From Paramoeba atlantica (Eukaryota; Protista; Discosea), in contig CDRNVI010000160.1 in NCBI GenBank assembly GCA_977017575.1, positions 1 to 64,000 of the forward strand: a stretch of 64,000 bases of DNA. Direction: 5' to 3'. Positions 30,289 through 46,700 of this stretch are shown here, one piece after another (within the stretch, counting starts at the first letter, position 1; the number at the start of each line of letters is the position of its first letter). The translations under genes and the position numbers were made by a program. A model generated the notes under the pieces. That model ran no database searches. It was given only the letters and a program-made list of their open reading frames with translations, and had not been told where the DNA came from.

Positions 30289-30469
30289 CCTCAATTTTGT
30301 TTCCGAAACCGAAACCGAGAGCGTTGGTTGGAAACAAACCGAAAACAACCTAAAAAAAGGGACTGTTTTTTTGTTTGTTTTTTTTCTCTTTGGTCTCTCT
30401 CCCTCCCTCTCCCTCCCTCTCCCTCTCCCTCTCTCCCCCTCCCTCTCTCTTCAAACCCTCAATGATCTG

Positions 30470-31530
30470 ATGAAGAAACGAATTGATCCAACCGAGGAGG
30501 AAAACGAGGAGGTAGTGAATGAAGAATCCATTGATCAACCGAGGACTCTCGAAGTCGTGTACATCATTCTCTGGAATGTCCTTCCCAGTGTCTTGATTAT
30601 CCTTATCAACAAACTTCTTTTTCTCGAGTATTCTTTTCCTTCTGCAACAATTCTCAGTTTCCTCCATTTGTTATCACAAATTGTGGTGATGAGTACTCTT
30701 TTGTTTGCTGGGGTTTTCAAACGAAAGCCTGTTTCAATTTTCACGATTTTGAGCATCAATATCCCACTTTCTTTGTCTCAGGTTGGTTGAAAAGAAGAAA
30801 AGAGAAGAAGAGGGAGGAGAGAGAAAAGAGGATGAATTTCATCACATCACAACAACACTTTTTTAAAAACTAAAGACAGGTTTTTCAAGCGATGAGTGTC
30901 AAAATGAATTCGCTAAGCACTTTCATGGTCATCAAACAACTTACCATTCCCTTGACTGCCTTTGCAGAAGTTTTGGTTGGAAAAAAAATGTTCACTTGGA
31001 AACTTTGCCTTGTTGCTCTGCTTATGACAATCAGTTCAACTCTCATTTGTGGGATTGAAATCCAAAACTCAAACATGTTGGGGATCTTGGTTGCTCTTCT
31101 TTCTGTTGTTACCAATGTATCTGGTCAGATGCTAGTGAGTGATGCCCTCCAAAATTCTGATGCTCTTGAAAAAATTGAGCCCCTCCAGCTGAGATTTGAG
31201 GCAACTGTCAAGGGGGGATGGGTCATGTCATTTGGCTTTTTGGTGGAGTTTTATCTCTTCCCTGGGATCATTGACGAAACGTCAGCCTATGATTGGAGTC
31301 AATGTATCTTTTTTTTGGCTTTGTCATGTATTTTGGCCCCTATTGTTGCAATTTCATTCTACTTTGTTGTGGAAACAGTTTCACTTTTTGCATATCAAAT
31401 TCTCTCACCATTGAAACTTTCGTTGGTTATCTTTTGCTCAATGATGTTTTTCCATGAGGAAATCCCTTTCACAAAGTTTTTGGGACTCACCTTGGCTGTG
31501 TTAGCAACCTTTATCTACACCAAATATTAA
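30470..31530 (+). CDS. Nucleotide-sugar transporter (TPT/SLC35E-like, UXT-like)
   Basis: join(30470..30781,30880..31530). About ten hydrophobic helices; motifs ILINKLL, YSFPSATILSFLH, NSLSTFMVIKQLTIP and YQILSPLKLSLVI match the TPT/NST family. Confidence 0.87.
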
Positions 31531-31627
31531 ACAACAACCCTAAAAACTTTTTTGACAACTTGTGTCTACAAGAACAACAACACACCATCTCCCGTCTTCT
31601 TTTTGAAATTACAAACAATCCAATGAA

Positions 31628-31704
31628 GAGGGAAAAAAGAGGGAAAAAAGAGGGAAAAAAGAGGGAAAAAAGAGGGAAAAAAGAGGGAAAAAAGAGGGAA
31701 AAAA
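31628..31704. repeat. 11-bp tandem repeat (GAGGGAAAAAA)x7 between converging genes
   Basis: Units start at 31628, 31639, 31650, 31661, 31672, 31683 and 31694. Confidence 0.95.
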
Positions 31705-31710
31705 TTGTGT

Positions 31711-32697
31711 TCACAATCTAAAAAAATCAAATTCTGGATAATTTGTCCAATTTGTCCAACCTGCCCACTTTGGTAGTCTAAAAGTGATTTGTTTCCTAGA
31801 CGTGCTAGTGAAATATGGTTCACAATGATCTGGTGTTCCAATCTTCCATTTCAGTCGATTGTGATATGCCCAAACTTGATCCACCCAAACTATGGTCCTC
31901 TTGCTGGAAATTAAGTTGTTAAAAAAAGCTTTAATGAACTTCCCATCCGCAGATCTTCTCTTTGGAGGAGGAAAAACCTCCCCCCACAACGCGCCTGATT
32001 CTTTAATTGCTCTTGATCGACCAAAGAAAGACCCTGTATCAACCGTTCCAATTTTGGGCAGTGGGACTAAAATTCCTTTCTTCTCGAATACCATGTTCCA
32101 GAGTGCTCCATCCAGTAAAGGAAGAGCTCTCACCAGTTCAGAAGTCTTGTTGAAAAAGAGACACCAGAGAATTGTGTCCAGATCGAGATGGTAGACAAAC
32201 ATTTCATCAGGTAGGAAGTCATGAGCAACATTCTTGATCCAAGCTGGGTATCTGAAGGGATCTTCATTTAAATCAGGCCCTTTCCCAGTTCCTCTCATAA
32301 TCACAGGAATGAAGACAGAGTTAAATTGTTTTGTTTTCTCAAGGGAGAAAGAGCTGGTTGCTAAAGTCCCATTTTCAGCAATCTTATCAGTGAATGTTAC
32401 ATCCAAATAGTCTTCTACACCAGCTCGATTGAGAATGTCATAGATATCAGATAAGAGAGCCCCCTCTTTGGCAGATCGAGGAAGGGCATCAGGAAAGATG
32501 AAGTAGCAGATGCGAGTCCATGCTTGAGGGGTTGTTTTGAGCTGAGATTGGATCAGTTTGAGAGTCTGGAAAAGATAGTTGTTGTCAGGTTCCTTGTAGA
32601 AAGATGTCACAAGTGCTAATGTCTTGGTATCGACTTGTAGGACACTGGTTATCGAGAGAAGAACCACCAAAAAAAAGACCCTGATGAACCCTTTCAT
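31711..32697 (-). CDS. Putative GT-A fold (GT2-like) glycosyltransferase with N-terminal membrane anchor/signal, 328 aa, intronless
   Basis: ATG at 32697 (MKGFIRVFFLVVLLSITSVL). DxD motif YHLDLDT; downstream VDTGSFFGRSRAI...RSADGKFI resembles the C-terminal motif of prokaryotic GT2-like enzymes. Confidence 0.68.
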   Translation of the reverse strand: MKGFIRVFFLVVLLSITSVLQVDTKTLALVTSFYKEPDNNYLFQTLKLIQSQLKTTPQAWTRICYFIFPDALPRSAKEGALLSDIYDILNRAGVEDYLDVTFTDKIAENGTLATSSFSLEKTKQFNSVFIPVIMRGTGKGPDLNEDPFRYPAWIKNVAHDFLPDEMFVYHLDLDTILWCLFFNKTSELVRALPLLDGALWNMVFEKKGILVPLPKIGTVDTGSFFGRSRAIKESGALWGEVFPPPKRRSADGKFIKAFFNNLISSKRTIVWVDQVWAYHNRLKWKIGTPDHCEPYFTSTSRKQITFRLPKWAGWTNWTNYPEFDFFRL

Positions 32698-32885
32698 CCC
32701 GAGAAAGGAGAGAAGGAGAGAAAAACTGAAGCTGCTGTCTTTGCGAAAAATGGCCAAGACGCCAAAAAAGGAAAACCAAATTCTCCTTTTCCTTTTTCGC
32801 TCGAATCGGCACACATTTTCCGTTCTCACCAACAACCACAACAACCACAACAACCACAACAACCACACGCACAAACAACTTGTTT

Positions 32886-34922
32886 ATGTCTGGCGGTGGT
32901 GTGATCGTTATTGGTGCTGGTGGATTGGGCCGATGTGTCGAAGACTTTTTTGAAGTGGCTGCGTTTGTTGATGACGGTTGTAAAGAATCATCTGTCAACG
33001 GTGTTCCTGTATTGGGTGGTGTCAGTAAGTTGCTTGAACTTGCTTCATCCAACAAGGAGATTATTCAAGTTGTCTTCGCTCTTGGCACCCCTGAAACAGC
33101 AAGACAGATCCATGAGAAGCTTCACTCGAGTCCCGCTTTTGCAAACTTGGCTTTCCCATCGTTAATCCATCCTTCTGCTTCTGTGAGTCGCCATGCCAAG
33201 GTTGGAATTGGAGCGATTGTGTTCCCTCATTCAGTTATTGGCCCAAATGCAGTGATTGGAAATTTCTGTTTTCTCAACACTTCAGCAGTTCTTTCTCACG
33301 ACGCTCATCTGGGTGACTTTTGCCGGCTGCACGGAGGGAGTCGAGTTCTCGGATGGACCCAAGTTGGAGACTCAGTCAGTGTTGGATCTCAGGCTGTTGT
33401 ACGTGATCGCTTGACGATTGGGAACAATGTGGAGATTGGTTGTGGAACAACTTTGGTCAGCGATATGGGAAGTAACCTTGTGGTGGCAGGCAATCCAGGT
33501 CGAGTGTTGAGAAACTTGGCACCTGTTGCTGCTGCTGAGAACGGAAAGCGATCTCGCTCATCAGAAGAAGTTTCGATTCCTGTTGACAATTCCCGGCTCA
33601 CTCACCCATTACATGGCCATTTGTTGAAATGTCCTTTCCCAGAAACAGTGCTCGACTTGCTGCACGAGAAGATGAAGAGCTGCAAAAGTAATGGGAGGGG
33701 GTCTCATTATCAACAGACTGTTTATAACCCATTGTTGTATGAAGAAATTCCCGAGATCAAAGACTTTTTGCACAAAACATTCCCGCATGACCGACCCCTG
33801 GCAGACTTGATTTTTCAGCAAGGAGAAACAGACTCAGGGTTTTCTTGGCACTGTGATTATGACAGCAATTTCATATTGGAGGATCCAACTGTAATGTTCT
33901 CACTCTGGTTCACTCTCACTGATATTACGAGCGAGACTGGAGCGAGGTTGCAGTTCACGGCTGACCATAACAGCATCCTTTTGGCAAGAATGGAAACTTT
34001 TAGTCGTGTGTACCATGGGCATCCAGCGTGTGGAGTAGCGCATCCATGGGGGAGTGTGGTCCTCCCAATTCTTCATGAACGGGCAATTGCATTGGATATG
34101 AAGAGAGGAGATTGCCTTGTATTCAGCAATCACATTTGGCATAAACCAGAGAGGGTGAAGAAAGAGGGTTTTGCTCGTACATCCTATGTCATCCGAATGA
34201 TACCCAAGAATGCCAGGTTCCATCGTGGCCGTGCCGAGATTGCCTCCAAAAGGTTCAACCCTTTTAAAATAGACCAAAAATTCTTGAACACACCTGATAT
34301 TCAGTGGGTTGATGAACCTTATGAAAATTCGAAAGAAAAAAAAAGCTTCTCAGAGAAGAATTCAATGGCTGTATTTGAAGGGTTTTGGATGAAGCATTAT
34401 GGATTTCAGGAGGCTATGGCCACTCGTCTCGTTATGGATGCGACTGAGAATTCCTCAAGCGTGTGGAAGCTCCTGGAAAGTGGGGTTATATCTCCCCCAA
34501 CCATGCTCTCTTCAGAGTGGAGGAAGGACCTCACCATTGAACAAGCTGAGGAGTTAGTCTGCCTCTCTATTTCAGAGGAAAAACGAACGATTCTCAAATA
34601 CCATCACTTTTTGCAGATGGCAGCCGCTGTACACCGCTTTCCAAACCATTCTTTTGCTGGAACACCTTTTGAAGGAGAAGAAACGAGATTGAAGGCGGTA
34701 AAAGTAGTGGAATTTGTTCGAAGGAGACCGGAGTGGGCCTTTCAAATTCGTCTTACTCAACTAGATGGACCGAATGGATTCTTCTACCCACCTGGGTGGA
34801 CCCTTGACTCTTTAGATCATTACTTGAAAGCAGAGGGAACAATCAATGAGAGTGTCATGGTGAGGTGGCAGAAGCAGTGTAATTCCATTCTTTCTGCTCT
34901 GGAAAAGTCAAAAATTATTTAA
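32886..34922 (+). CDS. PglD/NeuD-family sugar acyltransferase fused to a PhyH-like 2OG-Fe(II) dioxygenase and an unknown C-terminal domain, 678 aa, intronless
   Basis: N-terminal VIVIGAGGLGR...FVDD...VPVLG, LIHPSASVS, hexapeptide repeats, LSHD (catalytic His position) and VAGNPGR. Middle domain WHCD...LWFTLTD...GDCLVFSNHIWH...RTSY gives the HxD...H triad and an RxS 2OG-binding motif. Confidence 0.9.
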   Translation: MSGGGVIVIGAGGLGRCVEDFFEVAAFVDDGCKESSVNGVPVLGGVSKLLELASSNKEIIQVVFALGTPETARQIHEKLHSSPAFANLAFPSLIHPSASVSRHAKVGIGAIVFPHSVIGPNAVIGNFCFLNTSAVLSHDAHLGDFCRLHGGSRVLGWTQVGDSVSVGSQAVVRDRLTIGNNVEIGCGTTLVSDMGSNLVVAGNPGRVLRNLAPVAAAENGKRSRSSEEVSIPVDNSRLTHPLHGHLLKCPFPETVLDLLHEKMKSCKSNGRGSHYQQTVYNPLLYEEIPEIKDFLHKTFPHDRPLADLIFQQGETDSGFSWHCDYDSNFILEDPTVMFSLWFTLTDITSETGARLQFTADHNSILLARMETFSRVYHGHPACGVAHPWGSVVLPILHERAIALDMKRGDCLVFSNHIWHKPERVKKEGFARTSYVIRMIPKNARFHRGRAEIASKRFNPFKIDQKFLNTPDIQWVDEPYENSKEKKSFSEKNSMAVFEGFWMKHYGFQEAMATRLVMDATENSSSVWKLLESGVISPPTMLSSEWRKDLTIEQAEELVCLSISEEKRTILKYHHFLQMAAAVHRFPNHSFAGTPFEGEETRLKAVKVVEFVRRRPEWAFQIRLTQLDGPNGFFYPPGWTLDSLDHYLKAEGTINESVMVRWQKQCNSILSALEKSKII

Positions 34923-35021
34923 TAAAATATTTTTCATTCATGAATGAAAAAGGTAATAATAATAATAATTTATATTTTTAGAAAAATATATAAAGAGTTT
35001 TCTTTGATTAAAGTAAATAGA

Positions 35022-36302
35022 TTAAGACGAGTTCTCTTTTTCCTCAAAAGAAAAAGAAACATCAAGAGGTTCGAAAGGAGGATTTTCTTTAAAATGTGCT
35101 TTCAATTCTTTCGAATGAAGAAAAGCAGTCTTCAAAATGGAAACGATTTGAAAAATCTCTTCTTCCTTGATGGATGGACCACCAGGGAGCTGAAAACAAA
35201 TTTCTGATAACTTTTCAGTGTTGGGGAGGGGGTGAGGATGGAGACGACCTTTGTATGGTTCCATATTTTGAACACCTGGGACAAAATATCGACGACATCG
35301 AACATTCTCAGCACGCAAGACAGCCACAATTTCATCTCGATTAAGTTGAAACTTATCGGAATTATCCAAGCAACAAACAACAGATTGGTAATTGTTGGTT
35401 GAATTAGGGTGAACGCCAGTTGCTCCAACCAACTGAACTCCTGGGATTGAGGATAAGTGCTGTTTGTACAAATGCCACACCATTGAGCACCTTTTCATCA
35501 AATCATTCAGAGAGTTCAGGTTGGCAAGAGCCAAACCTGCGTGGAGTTCAGATAATTTCGCATTTGATCCCAAACAAACAACTCGATCAGTCATCAAAAA
35601 CCCAAAATTTCGAAGAAATCGACATTTTTCTGCGAGTCGTTCATTGTTGGTGGTGATCATCCCTCCCTCTGCAGAAGAAAAAAACTTGGTGGCATGAAAA
35701 GAAAAGACTTCAGCCCTCCCAAACCCTCCAATCTTTTTCCCTTCATGTTGACAGTTGAAAGCGTGGGCAGCATCAAAGAGCAATGGAATTTCATGAGAAG
35801 AACAAAGCTTTTCCATCGCCACAACATCACATCCTCTTCCCCACAAATGAACTCCAATCACAGCAGCAGTGTTTGGGCCAATGCAACGAGAAAGAGAATC
35901 AACTGAAATCAAGTGACTATCCCGATCACAATCACAAAACACACATCGATACCCAGCCATTTCGACGGCATGTGCAGTTGCAACAAAAGTCCAAGCAGGG
36001 ACAATCACTTCAATCTTTTCTCCTCTCTCCCAAGGATCACCCAATTCCGCTCGTAAAACCAACTGCAGACCAAGAGTCGCATTTGCCACACAGATACAAT
36101 ATTTCACCCCCAAAAGCTCGCTCAAATCTTTCTCCAGCTTCTGAACAAAAGGGCCATTGTTCGTTAAGTTCCCGCTTTCAAGAGACGATCGAAAATACTC
36201 CAATGCTTTCTCGATATCGAGAGTGTTTGGTTTTCCAACGGCGAGTTCGTTTTTGAAGGTGGGTTTCTTGGTAGAAAGAACAGCCAGCGGTGGAACGGCC
36301 AT
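35022..36302 (-). CDS. DegT/DnrJ/EryC1/StrS PLP-dependent sugar aminotransferase, VioA-like, 426 aa, intronless
   Basis: ATG at 36302. Motifs LTNNGPFVQKLE, VANATLGL, VPAWTFVATAHA, GVHLWG, FDAAHAF, FSFHATK (PLP Lys), EGGMI, RNFGF, NAKLSELHA and RRYF. Confidence 0.95.
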   Translation of the reverse strand: MAVPPLAVLSTKKPTFKNELAVGKPNTLDIEKALEYFRSSLESGNLTNNGPFVQKLEKDLSELLGVKYCICVANATLGLQLVLRAELGDPWERGEKIEVIVPAWTFVATAHAVEMAGYRCVFCDCDRDSHLISVDSLSRCIGPNTAAVIGVHLWGRGCDVVAMEKLCSSHEIPLLFDAAHAFNCQHEGKKIGGFGRAEVFSFHATKFFSSAEGGMITTNNERLAEKCRFLRNFGFLMTDRVVCLGSNAKLSELHAGLALANLNSLNDLMKRCSMVWHLYKQHLSSIPGVQLVGATGVHPNSTNNYQSVVCCLDNSDKFQLNRDEIVAVLRAENVRCRRYFVPGVQNMEPYKGRLHPHPLPNTEKLSEICFQLPGGPSIKEEEIFQIVSILKTAFLHSKELKAHFKENPPFEPLDVSFSFEEKENSS

Positions 36303-36479
36303 GATTCTTGTGGAAAACTGTTTGCGGAAAACAAACAAAAAAAAGTGAAAAAAAGTGAAAAAACCCGCGTCCTTTTTTTTTCTGATCCCATTTTCATTTT
36401 CAAAGATTTTCTTTACTTTTTGTTTGGTTGTTGTTGAGAGTAAAGGGAAGGAAAAATCATTCAATCTAAATTAAAAGTT

Positions 36480-37905
36480 TTATTTTTCTTTTTTTGGTCT
36501 CCAATTCTTGCAATGAACTTTATGTTCTGGCCAATTTTTCTTTTGGCACTCTCTCGAACAATAAAAAGCTCGCCCACATTGAGAACATTTTAAAGGTGCC
36601 TCTTTTTCACACTCTTTTCCTGTACAAAATTCTACTAAAACCCCCCTGGCAACCTGTTTGTTCTGCCGGTGGAGAGATTGATTGTCAGAGACAGGATTTG
36701 CTTTCCGACCAAACCTTACATACCCCGCATAAGCTTCTAAACAATTCCCTAAATTCATTTTTATCAGCTCAGAAAAGGTGATGGTACATGGATAAGACAA
36801 AGCACAAAGATAGGCACCACACGCTTGGAGATATTTTTCCATTCGTTTGAGGCACAAAGCAAAACAATTGAAACAATGAGAAGCCATCCCTGGACCAGTC
36901 CAGCCTAACGAGGTCATCTCTGTGGCTCTAAAGTAGCTCTGAGCAGCCTTTGCGGTCATTCCACAAGATTCATATACTTCACCAAGATCGACATAATAAA
37001 ATGAGAGGTCATGGTACAAGCTCGGATAGGAGAAATATTGAGGCAAGAGAAGGAGAATCGATTCAAATGCTTCTCCATATCGCTTTTGTTCTCTCAGCTT
37101 GATTGCAGCTCCCTTAGCTCCAGCGATGAGAGGAAGGATAGATTTGATATCACGTTGACGGCAAGCAGCCAAGAAACACTCCAGTGTTAAAGTAAATGTC
37201 TCTCGCTTTGATAATGGAGGAATTTTAAAATCCGGTCTTGTTTCGGCAGAAGAAGTCATCCCAACCATTGTCCCCTGTTTCAGGTAGAGGTGGGTACGAT
37301 ACCCCTCATACATGTCACTTTCACCACGAATTTTGTTGATAAAAGAAGGATTTGTCATTGTCAGTATAAGATCATCACCCTGATACTTGGTATGGGAAAA
37401 ACTTTCTCCTGTACAGGGGTGATTTCATTTTAATTTTTTTTTTAAAAAAAGAGGAAGAATATGAATTAATTAATCGAAACGAAAAAAAAAAACCTTTTGA
37501 TATGAACAGTTGATGATCTCGAGAAAAATGGAAAATCTTTCGTTCCTCCTCTACCGCCTCGCAAGAGATCCCTCCATACTTACAGGATTCATTCCAGTTC
37601 TGTTCAGAAAACAACGCTTGATTCCATTTCCAATCGTCTCCCGCTTCAGGAATTTTCACTTCCTTGTAAGAGGGAATCTTTCGTTGACTTTGTCTCACTT
37701 CATCCCCAGAGAGAGGGAGGTCAACTCTCAAACCTTCCAACTCTTGATCCTCAAACTCCATCTTCTCCACTTTCCACTGGACAATCAGAGTAAGAACACC
37801 AACTAACGGGTGGTTTTCTTGGACGATAGAATAAGAGGAGGTCCCAGGAAAGCCATGAGGTGTTGAGGGAGGGAGGTTGAGGTTGATCACAACTGTCTTG
37901 GGCAT
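36480..37905 (-). CDS. Zinc-finger MYND protein with TPR-like helices and an unknown N-terminal region
   Basis: Intron 37493..37409 (AAG|GTTTTT...TACAG) joins ORF 37375..37905 in frame to ORF 36480..37358. C-terminal CTGKEC...CSQCGRAFYCSRECQKKNWPEHKVHC is a MYND finger. Confidence 0.8.
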
Positions 37906-40754: not shown

Positions 40755-43700
40755 ATGTGGGAGAAACATCTTATTCTCGCTTTTTTGTTCATCTTTCTCG
40801 TCTTGTTTTCTCCAACCAACGCGACCCAACCATGCGACTTTACTGCTTCAGTTCACTCAGGTTATTTTTCATTTTTTTTTAGTTGTTTTCTCGAATGAAA
40901 AGTAACCACTTTTTTTTTGGCTCAAGATTGTGAGTGGCCGAGTTGTAATATAATTGGAGAAGATCACACAGCAGAGTCTTTTTCCAATGTGTCATTCCCT
41001 TCAAATTGCACAACAATCAGAATTGAGGATTCAATATTCGCCTCTACGACTTTTCGCTTTTGTGAATTCACTCCAGAAGGATCATTTTTCATCACTAATT
41101 CAGTTTTCGATCACTCTGTTTGGTCGGAGGTCCTCATTCTTGGCGAATTTCCAACTTTAGCACCAGTACCAGAAAATTACATTGTTCTCTTCGAAAATTG
41201 TTCTTTTTACGACGTTGAATGGGAGGACGTGACCATTTCAGTTTCGGGAACTCGATATTTTCCGTCTTCTACGTTCGAAAGTCGAGGAGGAATTGGGATT
41301 ATAGAATGTAATTTTGATCAATCAAATTGGGTCAGTGTTAAACTCCAAACACTTCCTGAATTCGTTCTCACTTTAGTTGAAGATAACTTTGAGTTTACCA
41401 CTGGTATTTTTTTCGAAGAATCCACCTTTAATGATGCGGTATTTTATGACATTCTTTTTGATATGATGGGAGAGGTGTTCTTAGATGGAGAAGGCAACCC
41501 AGGAATGAGAATGGGCGGGATTATTTTCTATGATTGTGAGTTTGTCAATGCGAGATGGTCTGCGTCAATCTTTCGTTTTGATGGTTCATTAACTGCAATG
41601 AATGTTTCGAGTAATGGCTATCCCTTTTGGAAAAAACCTCTTTGGGGTCTTGCATTTATTCATATGAAGGCAGCTTTCTCTTATTGGGAATCTGTTGATA
41701 TCTTTCTGAACGGGCAATTCAATGCGAATGAAGCTTGTGCTGAATGTTTTCTCTCTGGATTCCATATTTTGGGAGAGGAGACAAATTTTTCTTCTGCCGT
41801 CTTTGATGATTTTAATATCGATTGCACCTCCATTTTCTCAGAGGGCGAAGAAATAACCACTTCCTCTCTCATGTCAGCTGTTACAATTGGTACATTATCT
41901 TATCCAGCGTACAATATAACTGAATTCGGTGTACTTAATTTCGCCGATTGTTACTTTCGAAACTTTCGAATTTTTTCAGATGTTACAATGGACTGTACAA
42001 AGGAAAATTATCGAGTTTACATGCGGAATGTAGATTTTTCTGGGAGCACTTTTTGTCGATGGGAAATTGGGGCAGAGGGAGGAATGTTTTCTGAGACTTC
42101 TAACTCTTATTTTGTGGCTCTTGTCTCCTGGGCTGATTTTCGAGAGACTGTGTGGAATGATGTTGTCTGGGAAGCTGAAGTAACATTCGATGCTAACAAC
42201 CCTAGTACTGGAGTTTTTTTCCAAGGAATATATTTACAAGAAAGTTCTTGGAATAATGTAAAAATGTACTTAGAAAACCAAGGCGGATCTTTTGGTACTA
42301 ACTCTCGCTCCTTTCACTTTCAATTTAATGTGCAGCTACAAGGCATGACAATGTGCAGTGTTGAGATGAGGGCAGCTGGGGTAGATCAGGATTTTTCGTG
42401 TTCAATGTCATCCTCTTGGGATCAGGCAGACATCTCTGGATTTCGTTTTGTTGCTCCTGATGGTGATTTTGAAGCATCATCGTACACAGGCTCTTCTTTT
42501 GTTCAATCCGACTTTTCATCTTCACTGTTTGGCTTGACTTTTATCGGCTCTGAGACTGTTTGTGATGTTTCTGTAAATGGAGGTCCTCTACAAGACCTCG
42601 GAAATTGCAGCAGTTCAACAGTTCTTGATCGATTTGCTGGTTGTCCTTATCTCCTTCAGAATTTTTCTCTTTCTGATTCTGAAGCTTGTCCTGACTTCCC
42701 CTCACCTTCACCAGCACCATTGCCAGTACCATCCCCAATACCAGCACCATCACCTGTACCAGCGCCCTCTCCAGTACCAGCGCCCTCTCCAGTACCAGCA
42801 CCATCTCCAACCCCAGCACCATCACCTGTACCAGCTCCATCTCCTGTACCAGCACCATCTCCAGTACCAGCACCATCTCCAGCCCCAGCACCCTCTCCTG
42901 TCCCAGCACCATCTCCAACCCCAGCACCATCACCAGTCCCAGCACCATCTCCAGTCCCAGCACCATCTCCAGTCCCAGCACCCTCTCCTGTCCCAGCACC
43001 ATCTCCAACCCCAGCACCATCACCTGTACCAGCACCATCTCCAGTACCAGCACCCTCTCCAATCCCAGCACCCTCTCCAATACCAGCACCCTCCCCAATA
43101 CCAGCACCATCTCCTGTACCAGCACCATCTCCAATACCAGCACCATCTCCAATACCAGCACCATCTCCAATACCAGCACCATCTCCAGTCCCAGCTCCAT
43201 CACCTGTACCTGCACCATCTCCAATACCTGCACCATCTCCAATACCAGCACCCTCTCCAGTACCAGCACCATCTCCAATCCCAGCACCATCACCTGTACC
43301 AGCACCATCTCCTGTACCTGCACCCTCTCCAATACCTGCACCATCTCCAATCCCAGCACCATCACCTGTACCAGCACCATCTCCTGTACCAGCACCCTCT
43401 CCAGTCCCAGCTCCATCTCCAGTCCCAGCACCATCTCCAGTACCAGCACCATCGCCTGTACCAGCACCATCTCCAGTACCAGCACCATCTCCAGTACCTG
43501 CACCATCTCCAGTCCCAGCACCATCACCTGTACCAGCACCATCTCCAATACCAGCTCCATCTCCAGTCCCAGCTCCATCGCCTGTACCAGCACCATCTCC
43601 AGTCCCAGCACCCTCTCCAGTCCCAGCACCATATCCAGTCCCAGCTCCATCTCCAGTCCCAGCTCCATCGCCTGTACCAGCACCATCTCCAATACCAGCA

Positions 43701-46700
43701 CCATCCCCAATACCAGCTCCATCCCCAATACCAGTTCCATCGCCTGTACCAGCACCATCTCCAATACCAGCACCATCCCCAATACCAGCTCCATTGCCTG
43801 TACCAGCACCCTCTCCAATACCAGCACCATCTCCAGTACCAGCTCCATTGCCTGTACCAGCTCCATCTCCAATCCCAGCACCATCCCCAGTACCAGCACC
43901 ATCCCCAGCACCATCTCCAATACCAGCACCATCTCCAGTACCAGCTCCATCTCCAATCCCAGCACCATCTCCAGTCCCAGCTCCATCTCCAGTACCAGCA
44001 CCATCCCCAATACCAGCTCCATCTCCAGTACCAGCACCCTCTCCAATACCAGCACCATCCCCAGTACCAGCTCCATCTCTAATACCAGCTCCATCTCCAG
44101 TCCCAGCTCCATCCCCTGTACCAGCTCCATCCCCTGTACCAGCTCCATCTCCTGTCCCAGCGCCATCTCCTGTACCAGTTCCATCACCTGTACCAGCACC
44201 ATCTCCTGTACCAGCACCCTCTCCAGCACCAGCACCATCTCCAATACCAGCACCATCCCCAGTACCAGTTTTACCCCCTCAAATAATTCCTCTTACAACA
44301 TCTTCCTCTTCTTTATTATACCTAGAAGCGCCAGTCTCTTCCCTCTCTCTCACATGGACATATTTTGATAGTTCTCTCTCTGAACCATGTCAAATTTGTC
44401 CATCACATGTGTGTCCATCAAATATCTGCCCAGGTTGTTCTTGTTCTGTTGATGGGGTTCTTGTCCCTTCAAATGCACTCCCTTCATTTTCTGAGATCAC
44501 CATTGGAGTTGGCCCCTACTTTTATCTCATTGATACATCAGTTTGGATTGAACCCACAATTGTGTTTGACAAGGGAAATGAGTTGTTGTGGTCCTCAGAC
44601 AAAGGAGATTTGATGATTGGAGTGGAAGTGTTGAATCCAAACACATGCCCAGAAGATGAACAGCTCATTGTTGCTGAATGGAGATGCCGATATCCTGATG
44701 CAGATGGAAGTGTGTGTCCTGGTACCTCTTCTGTCATTTCTGTGAACAGTAATAATCCTTCACTCGAGGTTGAGTATCCAGAAGACAGCCCTTCTGTGAT
44801 TGTCTGGACTTTGACAATGTCGTTTTGTTTGCCGAGTGAAGAAAGAAGGGAAGCAAGGGGCCAAGTAATTGGGGGTTGGGAATTGGCTGAGCCAGTTACG
44901 GTTCAAAAAACTGAATCGTCATTTCTCTTGTTCAGTTTTTCCTCACTTTCTTTTACAGTATGTGAGTCTTTGCTAACTGCTGACACTATCACACTCCAGC
45001 TCCAAATTGCTGCAGAATCTTGGAGTGAACTGTTATCAGATGATTCATCTGCTTTGATTTCTGTTCACTGGGCAGCTGAGAAGTGGGAGAATGACGATAC
45101 AGAAAGTAGAGTAAGTGTGCCAATGGATCAATCATGTGATGAGTCACCATGTGAATTGCAGTTTGGAGGAAACTTTGTGACACCAACAGGATTGGACAAC
45201 GGAACATTTACAGTTGTATTTCGTGGTGGATTTTTGGAGCCAGGAGAATCAGTCCAAGTCCAAACAACAGCGGTTCCAGTGTCACCTGATGATGGATCTG
45301 TGTTAAGTGGTTGGGAAGAGGCTACAATCCGATCTTGTGTGATTACACCTCTTGTCCCCCCATCTGGGGGGGATTGTTTGATAGAGTCCCCTGTTGAATC
45401 TTTAACAAATTACTCGATCGAATGTTTTGGATGGGAAGGAGAAAACGGCCCCTTTGCTTACATTTTTGAGATTCAAGGGCAAGATGGCTCATTTGTTGCG
45501 ATTTCAAACCCGATTGGACCCACAACATCGATTTTTTTCCCTTCAAGTCCTGAGGAATCTGAGGTTCAAATTCGTGTTCGGGTGTGTAATACTCGGGGAG
45601 CGTGCTCAGATGGGTATTTATTAGAGGTTGTTGTTCTTGCAAGAGAAGAGATCAGTGATTCTGAATGGGTTGACCTCATTGAACATGATCAAGAACTTCT
45701 TTCATCTGGGGATGTCATGGGAGCTGGAAATTATTTGTTATCTATTCTTGAGTCCTCTCCTCCCATAGAAATCCAAGCCGATTCAATTGAGATTATCACT
45801 GAAATTGTCGATACAATGTTAATTGCGAAACCACCAGCTGAAATGACAGGTGCGGAAGCAGACTTAGTTTTGAATTTACTGGCTTATTCTTCGAGCGATG
45901 GGAACAACCGAGACCAAAATTATGAGATTCTCCAGAATGTCACACAAGCAACCAGTTTCCCTCCTGGTGTTGCTTTAACTGTTTTGGATCAAGTAGCTAC
46001 CGGATCTGAATTCGACAGCGACAGTTCGGTTACATTTGATAATGTCAACGAAATTATCGTGAGGACTCAAGATCTATTGACAACGCAAACAGACTTTTGT
46101 GGGGAGGAATTTTTGTTTGCTGGGGAAACAGTGTCATATTTTGCTTTTACTCGTTCAGCGACCGAGTTGGGTGATAGTGATACATTGGTTCCGATCTATC
46201 CAGATGGGGATTCAGAAGATTCTTCTTCATCAGTATCATCTTTCTTTGTTTTACCTCCTTTTATCTCTGAATTAATTCTTGAGTGGGCGGACGAAAACTT
46301 TAACGAACAACAAACAACTGAGTCTTTATATTGTGTTCTGCTTCAGAGATCTCAAGTTGGGGAACAGTGCGATTTTCCGTCTCTTGACACTGAGAGTGAG
46401 AGTGATACGAGTGGGAGTATCACCGCGGGATCAGATGTCCAAGGATTGACACTATCGGTGCGATTGGATGGAGGAGAACCTGCAGAGATCGAGATTAACA
46501 ACCCTGATCTTGAAATCCAGATTTTTTATGATGTCGAAGAAGTAACACGAGCGTTCAAGAAGAAGCAGAAAAGAATCCAAGATTCAGGAGGTGGTGGTGG
46601 AAATCGTTTTGTTCTGGAAGATGATTTCGCTGAGTTGAGTGAAACATTGTGTGCGTTTATTAATGGACCAGATTGTACATATGATTTAAGCGGGTGTTAT

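Follow-up and report, generated by a model that had tools for sequence, protein, structure and literature searches.

Organization of the locus

Within a 64,000-nucleotide stretch of Paramoeba atlantica DNA (contig CDRNVI010000160.1, positions 1 to 64,000; hereafter the window), we analyzed a compact group of four genes at positions 30470-36302. They encode a putative nucleotide-sugar transporter, a probable membrane-anchored glycosyltransferase, an acyltransferase-dioxygenase fusion protein and a DegT-family aminotransferase, and may together make, import and transfer an N-acylated amino-deoxy sugar. The original prediction of four contiguous genes in alternating orientation was confirmed by the list of open reading frames (ORFs), by the raw sequence and by our own translations: all four genes are intact, follow each other in the order + - + -, and are separated by a tail-to-tail gap of 180 bp, a head-to-head gap of 188 bp and another tail-to-tail gap of 99 bp. 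As had also been predicted, three of them are intronless. The genes for the glycosyltransferase (31711-32697, minus strand, 328 aa), the fusion protein (32886-34922, plus strand, 678 aa) and the aminotransferase (35022-36302, minus strand, 426 aa) each consist of one unbroken ORF that can be aligned over its whole length with the homologs, and the transporter gene on the plus strand has a predicted intron of 98 nt.

The DesI-like aminotransferase and its bacterial ancestry

The aminotransferase matches PF01041, a family named DegT/DnrJ/EryC1/StrS, with an E-value of 5e-92 (309.3 bits against a gathering threshold of 19.8; model positions 5-359 of 360). Aminotransferases of the DegT family bind pyridoxal phosphate (PLP) through a lysine, in place of which the dehydratase members have a histidine; the PLP lysine of the window protein, K206 in the motif SFHATK, is invariant in an alignment of 22 sequences. 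The best NCBIfam model is TIGR04427 PLP_DesI (E = 4.8e-109), and the best match in PDB is the DesI structure 2po3 (E = 1.5e-80, residues 69-464 of the 480-aa ORF), followed by ArnB at ~1e-38 and by perosamine synthases and PseC, also at ~1e-35 to 1e-38. Relative to its bacterial homologs the protein has no N-terminal extension. Judged by these matches, it is a DesI-like aminotransferase predicted to act on C-4 of a nucleoside diphosphate (NDP)-4-keto-6-deoxyhexose; it is not assigned as a DesI ortholog because its 365 bits fall below the TIGR04427 equivalog cut-off of 650, which is decisive under NCBI's rule. The earlier label of a VioA-like enzyme was thus right as to function, and the nearest kin is DesI instead, by both the NCBIfam model and the PDB match.

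In an indexed search of 5.8 billion proteins, the best non-self match was the protein P0002 with 56% identity, and the other 118 matches listed were 42-47% identical, the few with a source name being bacterial. Three of these homologs lie in typical bacterial polysaccharide loci, together with Wzm/Wzt ABC transporters, GT2 and GT4 glycosyltransferases, sulfotransferases and methyltransferases. In a tree of 120 sequences, the window aminotransferase and P0002 form a long-branched clade (99 in the Shimodaira-Hasegawa-like approximate likelihood ratio test, SH-aLRT) that is nested among bacterial sequences. A bacterial type and ancestry of the aminotransferase is supported by these results. When one genome of each bacterial species was scanned, 586 relatives came up, the best 80 of which have 40-46% identity. 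These best 80 are scattered over Chloroflexota, Acidobacteriota, Planctomycetota, Cyanobacteria, Verrucomicrobiota and other phyla, and for this reason no bacterial donor phylum can be named. The scan of the Joint Genome Institute (JGI) metagenomes added no member to the eukaryotic clade and gave no match above 48% identity.

A recurrent pair with a PglD-type acyltransferase

A PglD-type acyltransferase gene is located within 6 kb of the DesI-like aminotransferase gene, often immediately upstream, in 27 of the 80 bacterial loci, and the same arrangement is present on three viral contigs. The acyltransferases beside the bacterial DesI-like genes are 25-32% identical to the acyltransferase domain of the window over its full length. 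The view of the aminotransferase and the PglD-type acyltransferase as a two-gene module of bacterial sugar pathways, on which the original prediction was built, is borne out by this recurrence.

The same pair is found on L001, the contig that carries P0002. This contig is eukaryote-like: its GC content is 0.40, its gene calls are fragmented, and it contains RING-finger and trypsin genes. The aminotransferase gene (8458-9711) is convergent with the gene of a PglD-type acyltransferase, as in the window, and the acyltransferase domains of the two contigs are 24% identical. The neighboring gene on L001 (10113-16466, minus strand) encodes a 2117-aa protein in a single ORF, with ketoreductase (KR), ketosynthase (KS), acyl-transferase and acyl carrier protein (ACP) domains and a C-terminal PglD_N/Hexapep domain. 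Its architecture resembles that of a one-module polyketide synthase, which could pass a beta-hydroxyacyl chain straight on to an amino sugar.

The acyltransferase is thus fused twice to acyl-chain chemistry, on L001 to a polyketide-synthase module and in the window to a dioxygenase of the acyl-CoA hydroxylase type. Because it is joined on both eukaryotic contigs to domains that make or modify acyl chains, the N-acyl group is probably a tailored one and not a plain acetyl. Taken as a whole, the aminotransferase-acyltransferase core of the locus is well supported.

The acyltransferase-dioxygenase fusion

Residues 1-215 of the fusion protein (32886-33530) form the N-acyltransferase domain, in which a Rossmann-like PglD_N part (PF17836, E = 1.9e-8, 35.2 bits against a cut-off of 23.4) is followed by a left-handed beta-helix of hexapeptide repeats (PF00132 Hexapep, E = 3.4e-12, 45.9 bits against a cut-off of 27). 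The NeuD/PglB/VioB model TIGR03570 is matched over positions 2-202 of 202 with an E-value of 7.8e-44, the score of 149.7 bits being narrowly under the cut-off of 160.8. Full-length alignments were obtained with the PglB acetyltransferase domain (4m98, 1.9e-25), VioB (7txp, 1.3e-20) and PerB (4ea7, 4e-17) in PDB. The active-site His-Asp pair is kept: H138, which we take to be the catalytic-base histidine of the beta-helix, lies in 'SHD' within 'LSHDAH' and aligns with 'DHD' of 4m98. By these alignments, the domain belongs with PglD, VioB and PerB, a class of enzymes for the N-acylation of NDP-4-amino-4,6-dideoxyhexoses.

The second domain, with approximate boundaries at residues ~235-450 (33588-34240), is of the PhyH type of Fe(II)/2-oxoglutarate dioxygenases. 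It scores 27-28.5 bits against PF05721, for which the cut-off is 22, with only model positions 96-204 of 213 being matched. The matched stretch contains H322-x-D324 as well as H416 and H419, the latter two being candidates for the distal histidine of the iron triad. In an atlas of protein clusters, 88 of the 100 clusters nearest to this part belong to the PhyH set (best score 0.96, 175 shared features). The third domain of ~210 aa (34293-34922, stop codon included) has no Pfam match at E<=10 and no PDB match, and its best atlas score of 0.81 is at chance level. For the PhyH and C-terminal parts together, there was no sequence match in PDB and no relative among the viral contigs.

At the DNA level the fusion is genuine because its 2-kb ORF runs without a break in two assemblies, and with PglD_N, Hexapep and PhyH all above their Pfam cut-offs the predicted fusion of a PglD/NeuD-type acyltransferase with a dioxygenase stands. 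Among the 5.8e9 proteins, where lengths of 0.55-1.75 times the query were considered, there was no full-length match to the fusion besides its own entry; a search with the whole protein gave three weak matches in addition to itself, all of them to the acyltransferase domain only.

A small family of probable anchored glycosyltransferases

The glycosyltransferase has one hydrophobic segment, predicted as transmembrane, at residues 4-22, directly followed by the conserved domain. It matched no Pfam family and no PDB sequence, and the word-indexed search of the 5.8e9 proteins returned its own entry only. An exhaustive HMMER search of 1.84 billion representatives revealed six weak homologs with E-values of 7e-8 to 5e-4. 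These proteins (P0126-P0131, from loci L003-L006) make up a small family, hitherto unannotated, of GT-A-like proteins with a signal anchor, and the family has been seen on six contigs that are non-bacterial-looking or unclassified. None of the homologs has a match in Pfam, except for a Methyltransf_24 domain fused in P0127, whose gene adjoins four tandem genes of 128-aa proteins.

The homologs align with the window protein from the first beta-strand through the C-terminus and have the blocks [YF]H[LIM]DxDN..C, DT[AG]xF, PD[AG] and [YF]HN[RA]..W in common. The DxD motif (D172-L-D174) comes after a predicted beta-strand, within the conserved YH-L-D-x-D-N block, and is kept in all six aligned members that cover the region. 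A single-sequence AlphaFold model of the window protein was unusable (predicted local distance difference test, pLDDT, 33.5), and the fold was judged on a model of residues 1-300 of P0127, made with a 7-sequence alignment (pLDDT 73.9, predicted template modeling score, pTM, 0.78). Foldseek searches of PDB, the Swiss-Prot models and the AlphaFold clusters with this model matched only GT-A glycosyltransferases, including WrtF, hyaluronan synthases, GT43 glucuronyltransferases, SpsA and TarP, at E-values of ~1e-10 to 1e-7 and template modeling (TM) scores of ~0.46-0.54. A protein-language-model search with the window protein points to GT2. The window protein is thus probably a GT-A glycosyltransferase with a DxD motif and a type-II (signal-anchored) topology, in agreement at the level of fold and motif with the membrane-anchored DxD enzyme first proposed, although by way of a homolog model and in an otherwise unannotated family.

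The transporter

The transporter gene consists of exon 1 (30470-30781, 104 codons, an ORF with a start codon), a predicted phase 0 GT..AG intron (30782-30879, 98 nt, GC 0.35), which is the sole in-frame join of the two ORFs, and exon 2 (30880-31530), which completes a spliced product of 320 aa. Exon 1 encodes three hydrophobic segments and has no Pfam match when searched alone. Exon 2 alone matches PF03151 TPT with an E-value of 1.3e-6 over model positions 85-290 of 291 (28.5 bits against a cut-off of 30) and also, weakly, EamA (2e-4) and TIGR00817 (3.5e-7); the gene call of the assembly itself is TPT (weak). Nine segments are found in the spliced protein at a hydropathy threshold of 1.4, with 9-10 transmembrane segments being predicted. 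From the exon 2 match and hydropathy, the protein is probably a carrier of the DMT superfamily in the triose-phosphate/nucleotide-sugar-transporter family, as predicted at the family level, and a nucleotide sugar is its putative cargo.

Reconstruction of a proposed pathway

We propose that a two-enzyme core of bacterial derivation and two secretory-pathway genes of eukaryotic type together make, import and transfer an N-acyl amino-deoxy sugar, a reading to which we give an even chance. In the cytosol, an NDP-4-keto-6-deoxyhexose would be transaminated at C-4 by the aminotransferase. A 4,6-dehydratase whose gene lies elsewhere would supply the keto-sugar; GDP-mannose or UDP-glucose 4,6-dehydratase, both common in eukaryotes, could serve. 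The fusion protein would N-acylate the amine of the NDP-amino sugar, and its dioxygenase domain may hydroxylate the acyl chain, 2-hydroxylation of acyl-CoA being a reaction of PhyH enzymes, or tailor the product in some other way. The finished NDP-sugar would be imported by the transporter into the endoplasmic reticulum or Golgi, where the lumenal GT-A enzyme would transfer it to a glycan. The predicted topology fits such a division into cytosolic synthesis, carrier import and lumenal transfer: the two enzymes have no signal peptide or transmembrane segment, the glycosyltransferase has its one N-terminal anchor, and the transporter is a multispanning protein.

The head-to-head intergenic region between the glycosyltransferase and fusion genes (32698-32885, 188 bp) contains pyrimidine-rich tracts before both starts, and we infer that the two genes may be co-regulated through it. 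Tracts of this kind lie directly 5' of all four start codons (30375-30460, 32698-32730, 32780-32885 and 36303-36370), including a long CT-rich one ahead of exon 1 of the transporter gene. If the organism trans-splices, they would be suitable as acceptor sites for a spliced leader. With its alternating orientation and predicted cis-intron, the locus does not resemble the gene arrays that are classical for kinetoplastids. An Rfam search of the flanks gave no match.

Several observations weigh against the four-gene pathway. The transporter and the glycosyltransferase are tied to the two enzymes by adjacency, by the shared 188-bp region and by fitting topology only, and unrelated neighbors are equally close, with a MYND-finger gene 178 bp past the aminotransferase gene and the next ORF 17 bp further on. 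The Pfam score of the transporter is just below the curated cut-off, and the fold of the glycosyltransferase has been seen through a homolog of ~23-29% identity with a 7-sequence alignment. The neighborhoods of the glycosyltransferase homologs are uninformative, having no sugar genes. A search confined to the 64-kb window found no 4,6-dehydratase, in line with the original statement that this step is lacking at the locus. The support for expression is a single short contig, 193 nt long and identical to positions 34283-34475 in the fusion gene, from a 2015 run of another study that bears the same organism label and is labeled 'RNA?'; as a sign of transcription it is weak, since carry-over of DNA is possible. 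Finally, L001 and its extension L209 do not have the four-gene arrangement, as only the aminotransferase gene and the gene with the acyltransferase domain adjoin there, and no homolog of the transporter, the glycosyltransferase or the PhyH part is present within ~8.5 kb (to the contig end) on one side and ~19 kb on the other. Of the synteny that was looked for, the enzyme pair recurs on this one related contig, and the other two genes and the dioxygenase were not found within these distances.

These observations lead to the strongest alternative, in which only the aminotransferase and the fusion protein cooperate, producing a soluble or lipid-linked N-acyl amino sugar resembling a secondary metabolite, and the transporter and glycosyltransferase genes are unrelated neighbors. 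It would explain why just the pair recurs on L001, where the aminotransferase is partnered by a polyketide-synthase module, a feature typical of natural-product chemistry; DesI itself comes from a macrolide sugar pathway, short gaps are usual in the region, and the glycosyltransferase gene holds four of the few single-nucleotide polymorphisms (SNPs) between two assemblies, with none in the aminotransferase and transporter genes. On the other hand, if glycosylation-type genes make up a few percent of the genome (our estimate, uncomputed), two more of them would be unlikely to abut the pair by chance. The glycosyltransferase and fusion genes have a head-to-head region in common, and a nucleotide-activated sugar normally needs a transferase, of which there is no other one nearby. 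On balance, we regard a pathway reduced to the two enzymes as somewhat unlikely. Of the originally proposed self-contained surface-glycosylation module, the enzyme pair is well supported, and the link to the transporter and glycosyltransferase is absent on L001/L209; for the four genes as they stand in the window, such a module is a reasonable hypothesis.

Origin of the locus

The suggested horizontal acquisition applies to the aminotransferase, which is bacterial in ancestry, and does not extend to a transfer of the cluster as a block, because the transporter gene has a predicted spliceosomal intron and the glycosyltransferase family is an orphan.

Another route would lead through a giant virus, the cluster being the remnant of an integrated glycosylation cluster of the Megavirinae type and not a direct acquisition from bacteria. 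Clusters with an aminotransferase, an N-acetyltransferase and a glycosyltransferase are known from the Megavirinae (Mimivirus and Megavirus), which carry them for viosamine and bacillosamine (PMC10117803, PMC9614988). Several of the atlas clusters nearest to the glycosyltransferase and PhyH parts are mainly viral, and viral contigs have acyltransferase-aminotransferase pairs, as described above. The viral homologs of the aminotransferase, however, have 42% identity at most and are no closer than the bacterial ones (40-47%), and single-protein scans of viral contigs gave no match for either the aminotransferase or the PhyH part. Likewise, no viral hallmark gene flanks the cluster, the transporter gene has a predicted intron, and the composition equals that of the host neighbors. 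We consider a viral remnant improbable, and the earlier comparison with Mimivirus holds as an analogy and not as sequence kinship.

By their flanks, composition and assemblies, the four genes are a nuclear locus of a protist with a compact genome. The flanking genes are eukaryotic and encode a 7tm_3 (family-3 G-protein-coupled receptor, GPCR)/ANF receptor, MYND, cullin and DOCK proteins. The GC content of the four genes is 0.39-0.46, with 0.37-0.43 at third codon positions (GC3), in comparison with 0.42 and 0.36-0.38 for the adjacent GPCR and MYND genes. In a second assembly, contig L002 matches the window with 99.68% identity along 22 kb and has the four ORFs intact. Of the sampled words of positions 30400-36400, 53-99% are contained in runs from three DNA samples, and positions 33400-36390 are found in these runs and spanned in one piece by contigs from two of them. 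One DNA run looks like Hi-C because its loose ends start with GATC. A bacterial contamination or assembly chimera, for which a contig name in the style of a metagenome-type assembler could speak, is effectively refuted by the position of the genes, which in both assemblies lie on a single contig amid eukaryotic genes with introns, by the two DNA runs that each give one contig across 33400-36390, by the alternating orientation, the predicted transporter intron and the neighbor-like composition, and by the lack of any bacterial protein above 47% identity; the contaminant contig that had been named as a possible refutation of the original prediction was thus not found.

Between the two assemblies, the aminotransferase and transporter are identical, the fusion protein differs by V229F, and the glycosyltransferase gene has two synonymous and two non-synonymous changes (D164N, Y278F), which are 4 of the ~10 SNPs lying outside a repeat region. 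These SNPs are too few for selection to be read from polymorphism. Nearly all SNPs and single-base indels between the assemblies fall into this region (42700-44300), the repetitive part of a 2017-aa ORF with repeats that are 83-87% alike, and are probably due to repeat mis-assembly or to real hypervariability. A microsatellite with an 11-nt unit, (GAGGGAAAAAA)n, occupies positions 31626-31705, in the gap where the transporter and glycosyltransferase genes face each other tail to tail, and is of different length in the window and in L002, the difference being two units (22 nt). The MYND-finger gene and the next ORF (36480-37905) lie on the same strand only 17 bp apart, in what is a gene-dense region.

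Significance and comparison with known systems

4-Amino-4,6-dideoxyhexoses are sugars characteristic of bacterial O-antigens and giant-virus fibrils; to our knowledge, they have not been described in glycans made by cellular eukaryotes. In the most far-reaching scenario, which we put forward tentatively, a eukaryote has domesticated the bacterial pair, fused the acyltransferase to a dioxygenase and a new domain, and wired both enzymes to an orphan Golgi GT-A enzyme and a dedicated transporter, resulting in a surface N-(hydroxyacyl)-4-amino-4,6-dideoxyhexose, with a related lineage having chosen a polyketide-synthase fusion instead. If this is true, the cell surface bears a class of sugars that has to date been known solely in bacteria and giant viruses, and the locus would illustrate the way in which cytosolic enzymes gained by horizontal transfer are connected to eukaryotic glycosylation. 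The two unusual fusions of the acyltransferase, to a PhyH domain and to a polyketide synthase with a carrier protein, could help explain how N-acyl groups are synthesized on amino sugars, and the glycosyltransferase marks out a small GT-A family that lacks annotation. In the literature, we found no published eukaryotic locus that joins an aminotransferase, an acyltransferase, a glycosyltransferase and a transporter, no acyltransferase-PhyH fusion, and no polyketide-synthase-acyltransferase fusion beside a DegT gene.

DegT genes of bacterial origin have a patchy distribution in protists, being known from Andalucia godoyi, apusomonads and an amoebozoan, with products predicted to be mitochondrial (PMC7050145). 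The dinoflagellate Karenia brevis has a bacterial-derived DegT gene, wecE, one Karenia type of which is a fusion with MviM (PMC2064935); in the literature on Euglenozoa no mention of DegT was found. The window aminotransferase resembles the proteins of Andalucia and Karenia in being the product of a bacterial-derived gene in a protist nuclear genome (PMC7050145, PMC2064935). In contrast to the window locus, no adjacent acyltransferase, glycosyltransferase or transporter gene has been reported for the Andalucia group or Karenia, and the window protein is without an N-terminal extension.

An organizational parallel is that of the Megavirinae, likewise a case of a non-bacterial genome with clustered aminotransferase, N-acyltransferase and glycosyltransferase genes for a bacterial-type 4-amino-4,6-dideoxy sugar (PMC10117803, PMC9614988). 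The window locus differs from it in belonging to a cellular eukaryote, in including a transporter and a signal-anchored glycosyltransferase, in having no dehydratase in the cluster, and in the low identity of its aminotransferase to viral homologs (<=42%).

At the level of single proteins, the nearest counterpart of the aminotransferase in both structure and NCBIfam model is DesI of Streptomyces venezuelae, a dTDP-4-keto-6-deoxy-D-glucose 4-aminotransferase, with SFHATK being conserved in the window enzyme. DesI feeds desosamine synthesis in a macrolide pathway, whereas the window enzyme is paired with an N-acyltransferase. This acyltransferase has the same PglD_N part, hexapeptide beta-helix and His-Asp pair as the acetyltransferase domain of PglB, PglD, VioB and PerB, from all of which it differs by its fusion to a PhyH dioxygenase and to a C-terminal domain of no matched family. 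The glycosyltransferase family, as represented by the P0127 model, superposes with known GT-A enzymes (SpsA, TarP, hyaluronan synthase and WrtF of GT2, and the GT43 enzyme GlcAT) at an E-value of ~2e-9 and a probability of 1.00, but falls outside any Pfam sequence family, with a TM-score of only ~0.46-0.54, and unlike those enzymes it is characterized by the motif set YHLDxDN / DTAxF / HNRxxW, which is particular to this small family.

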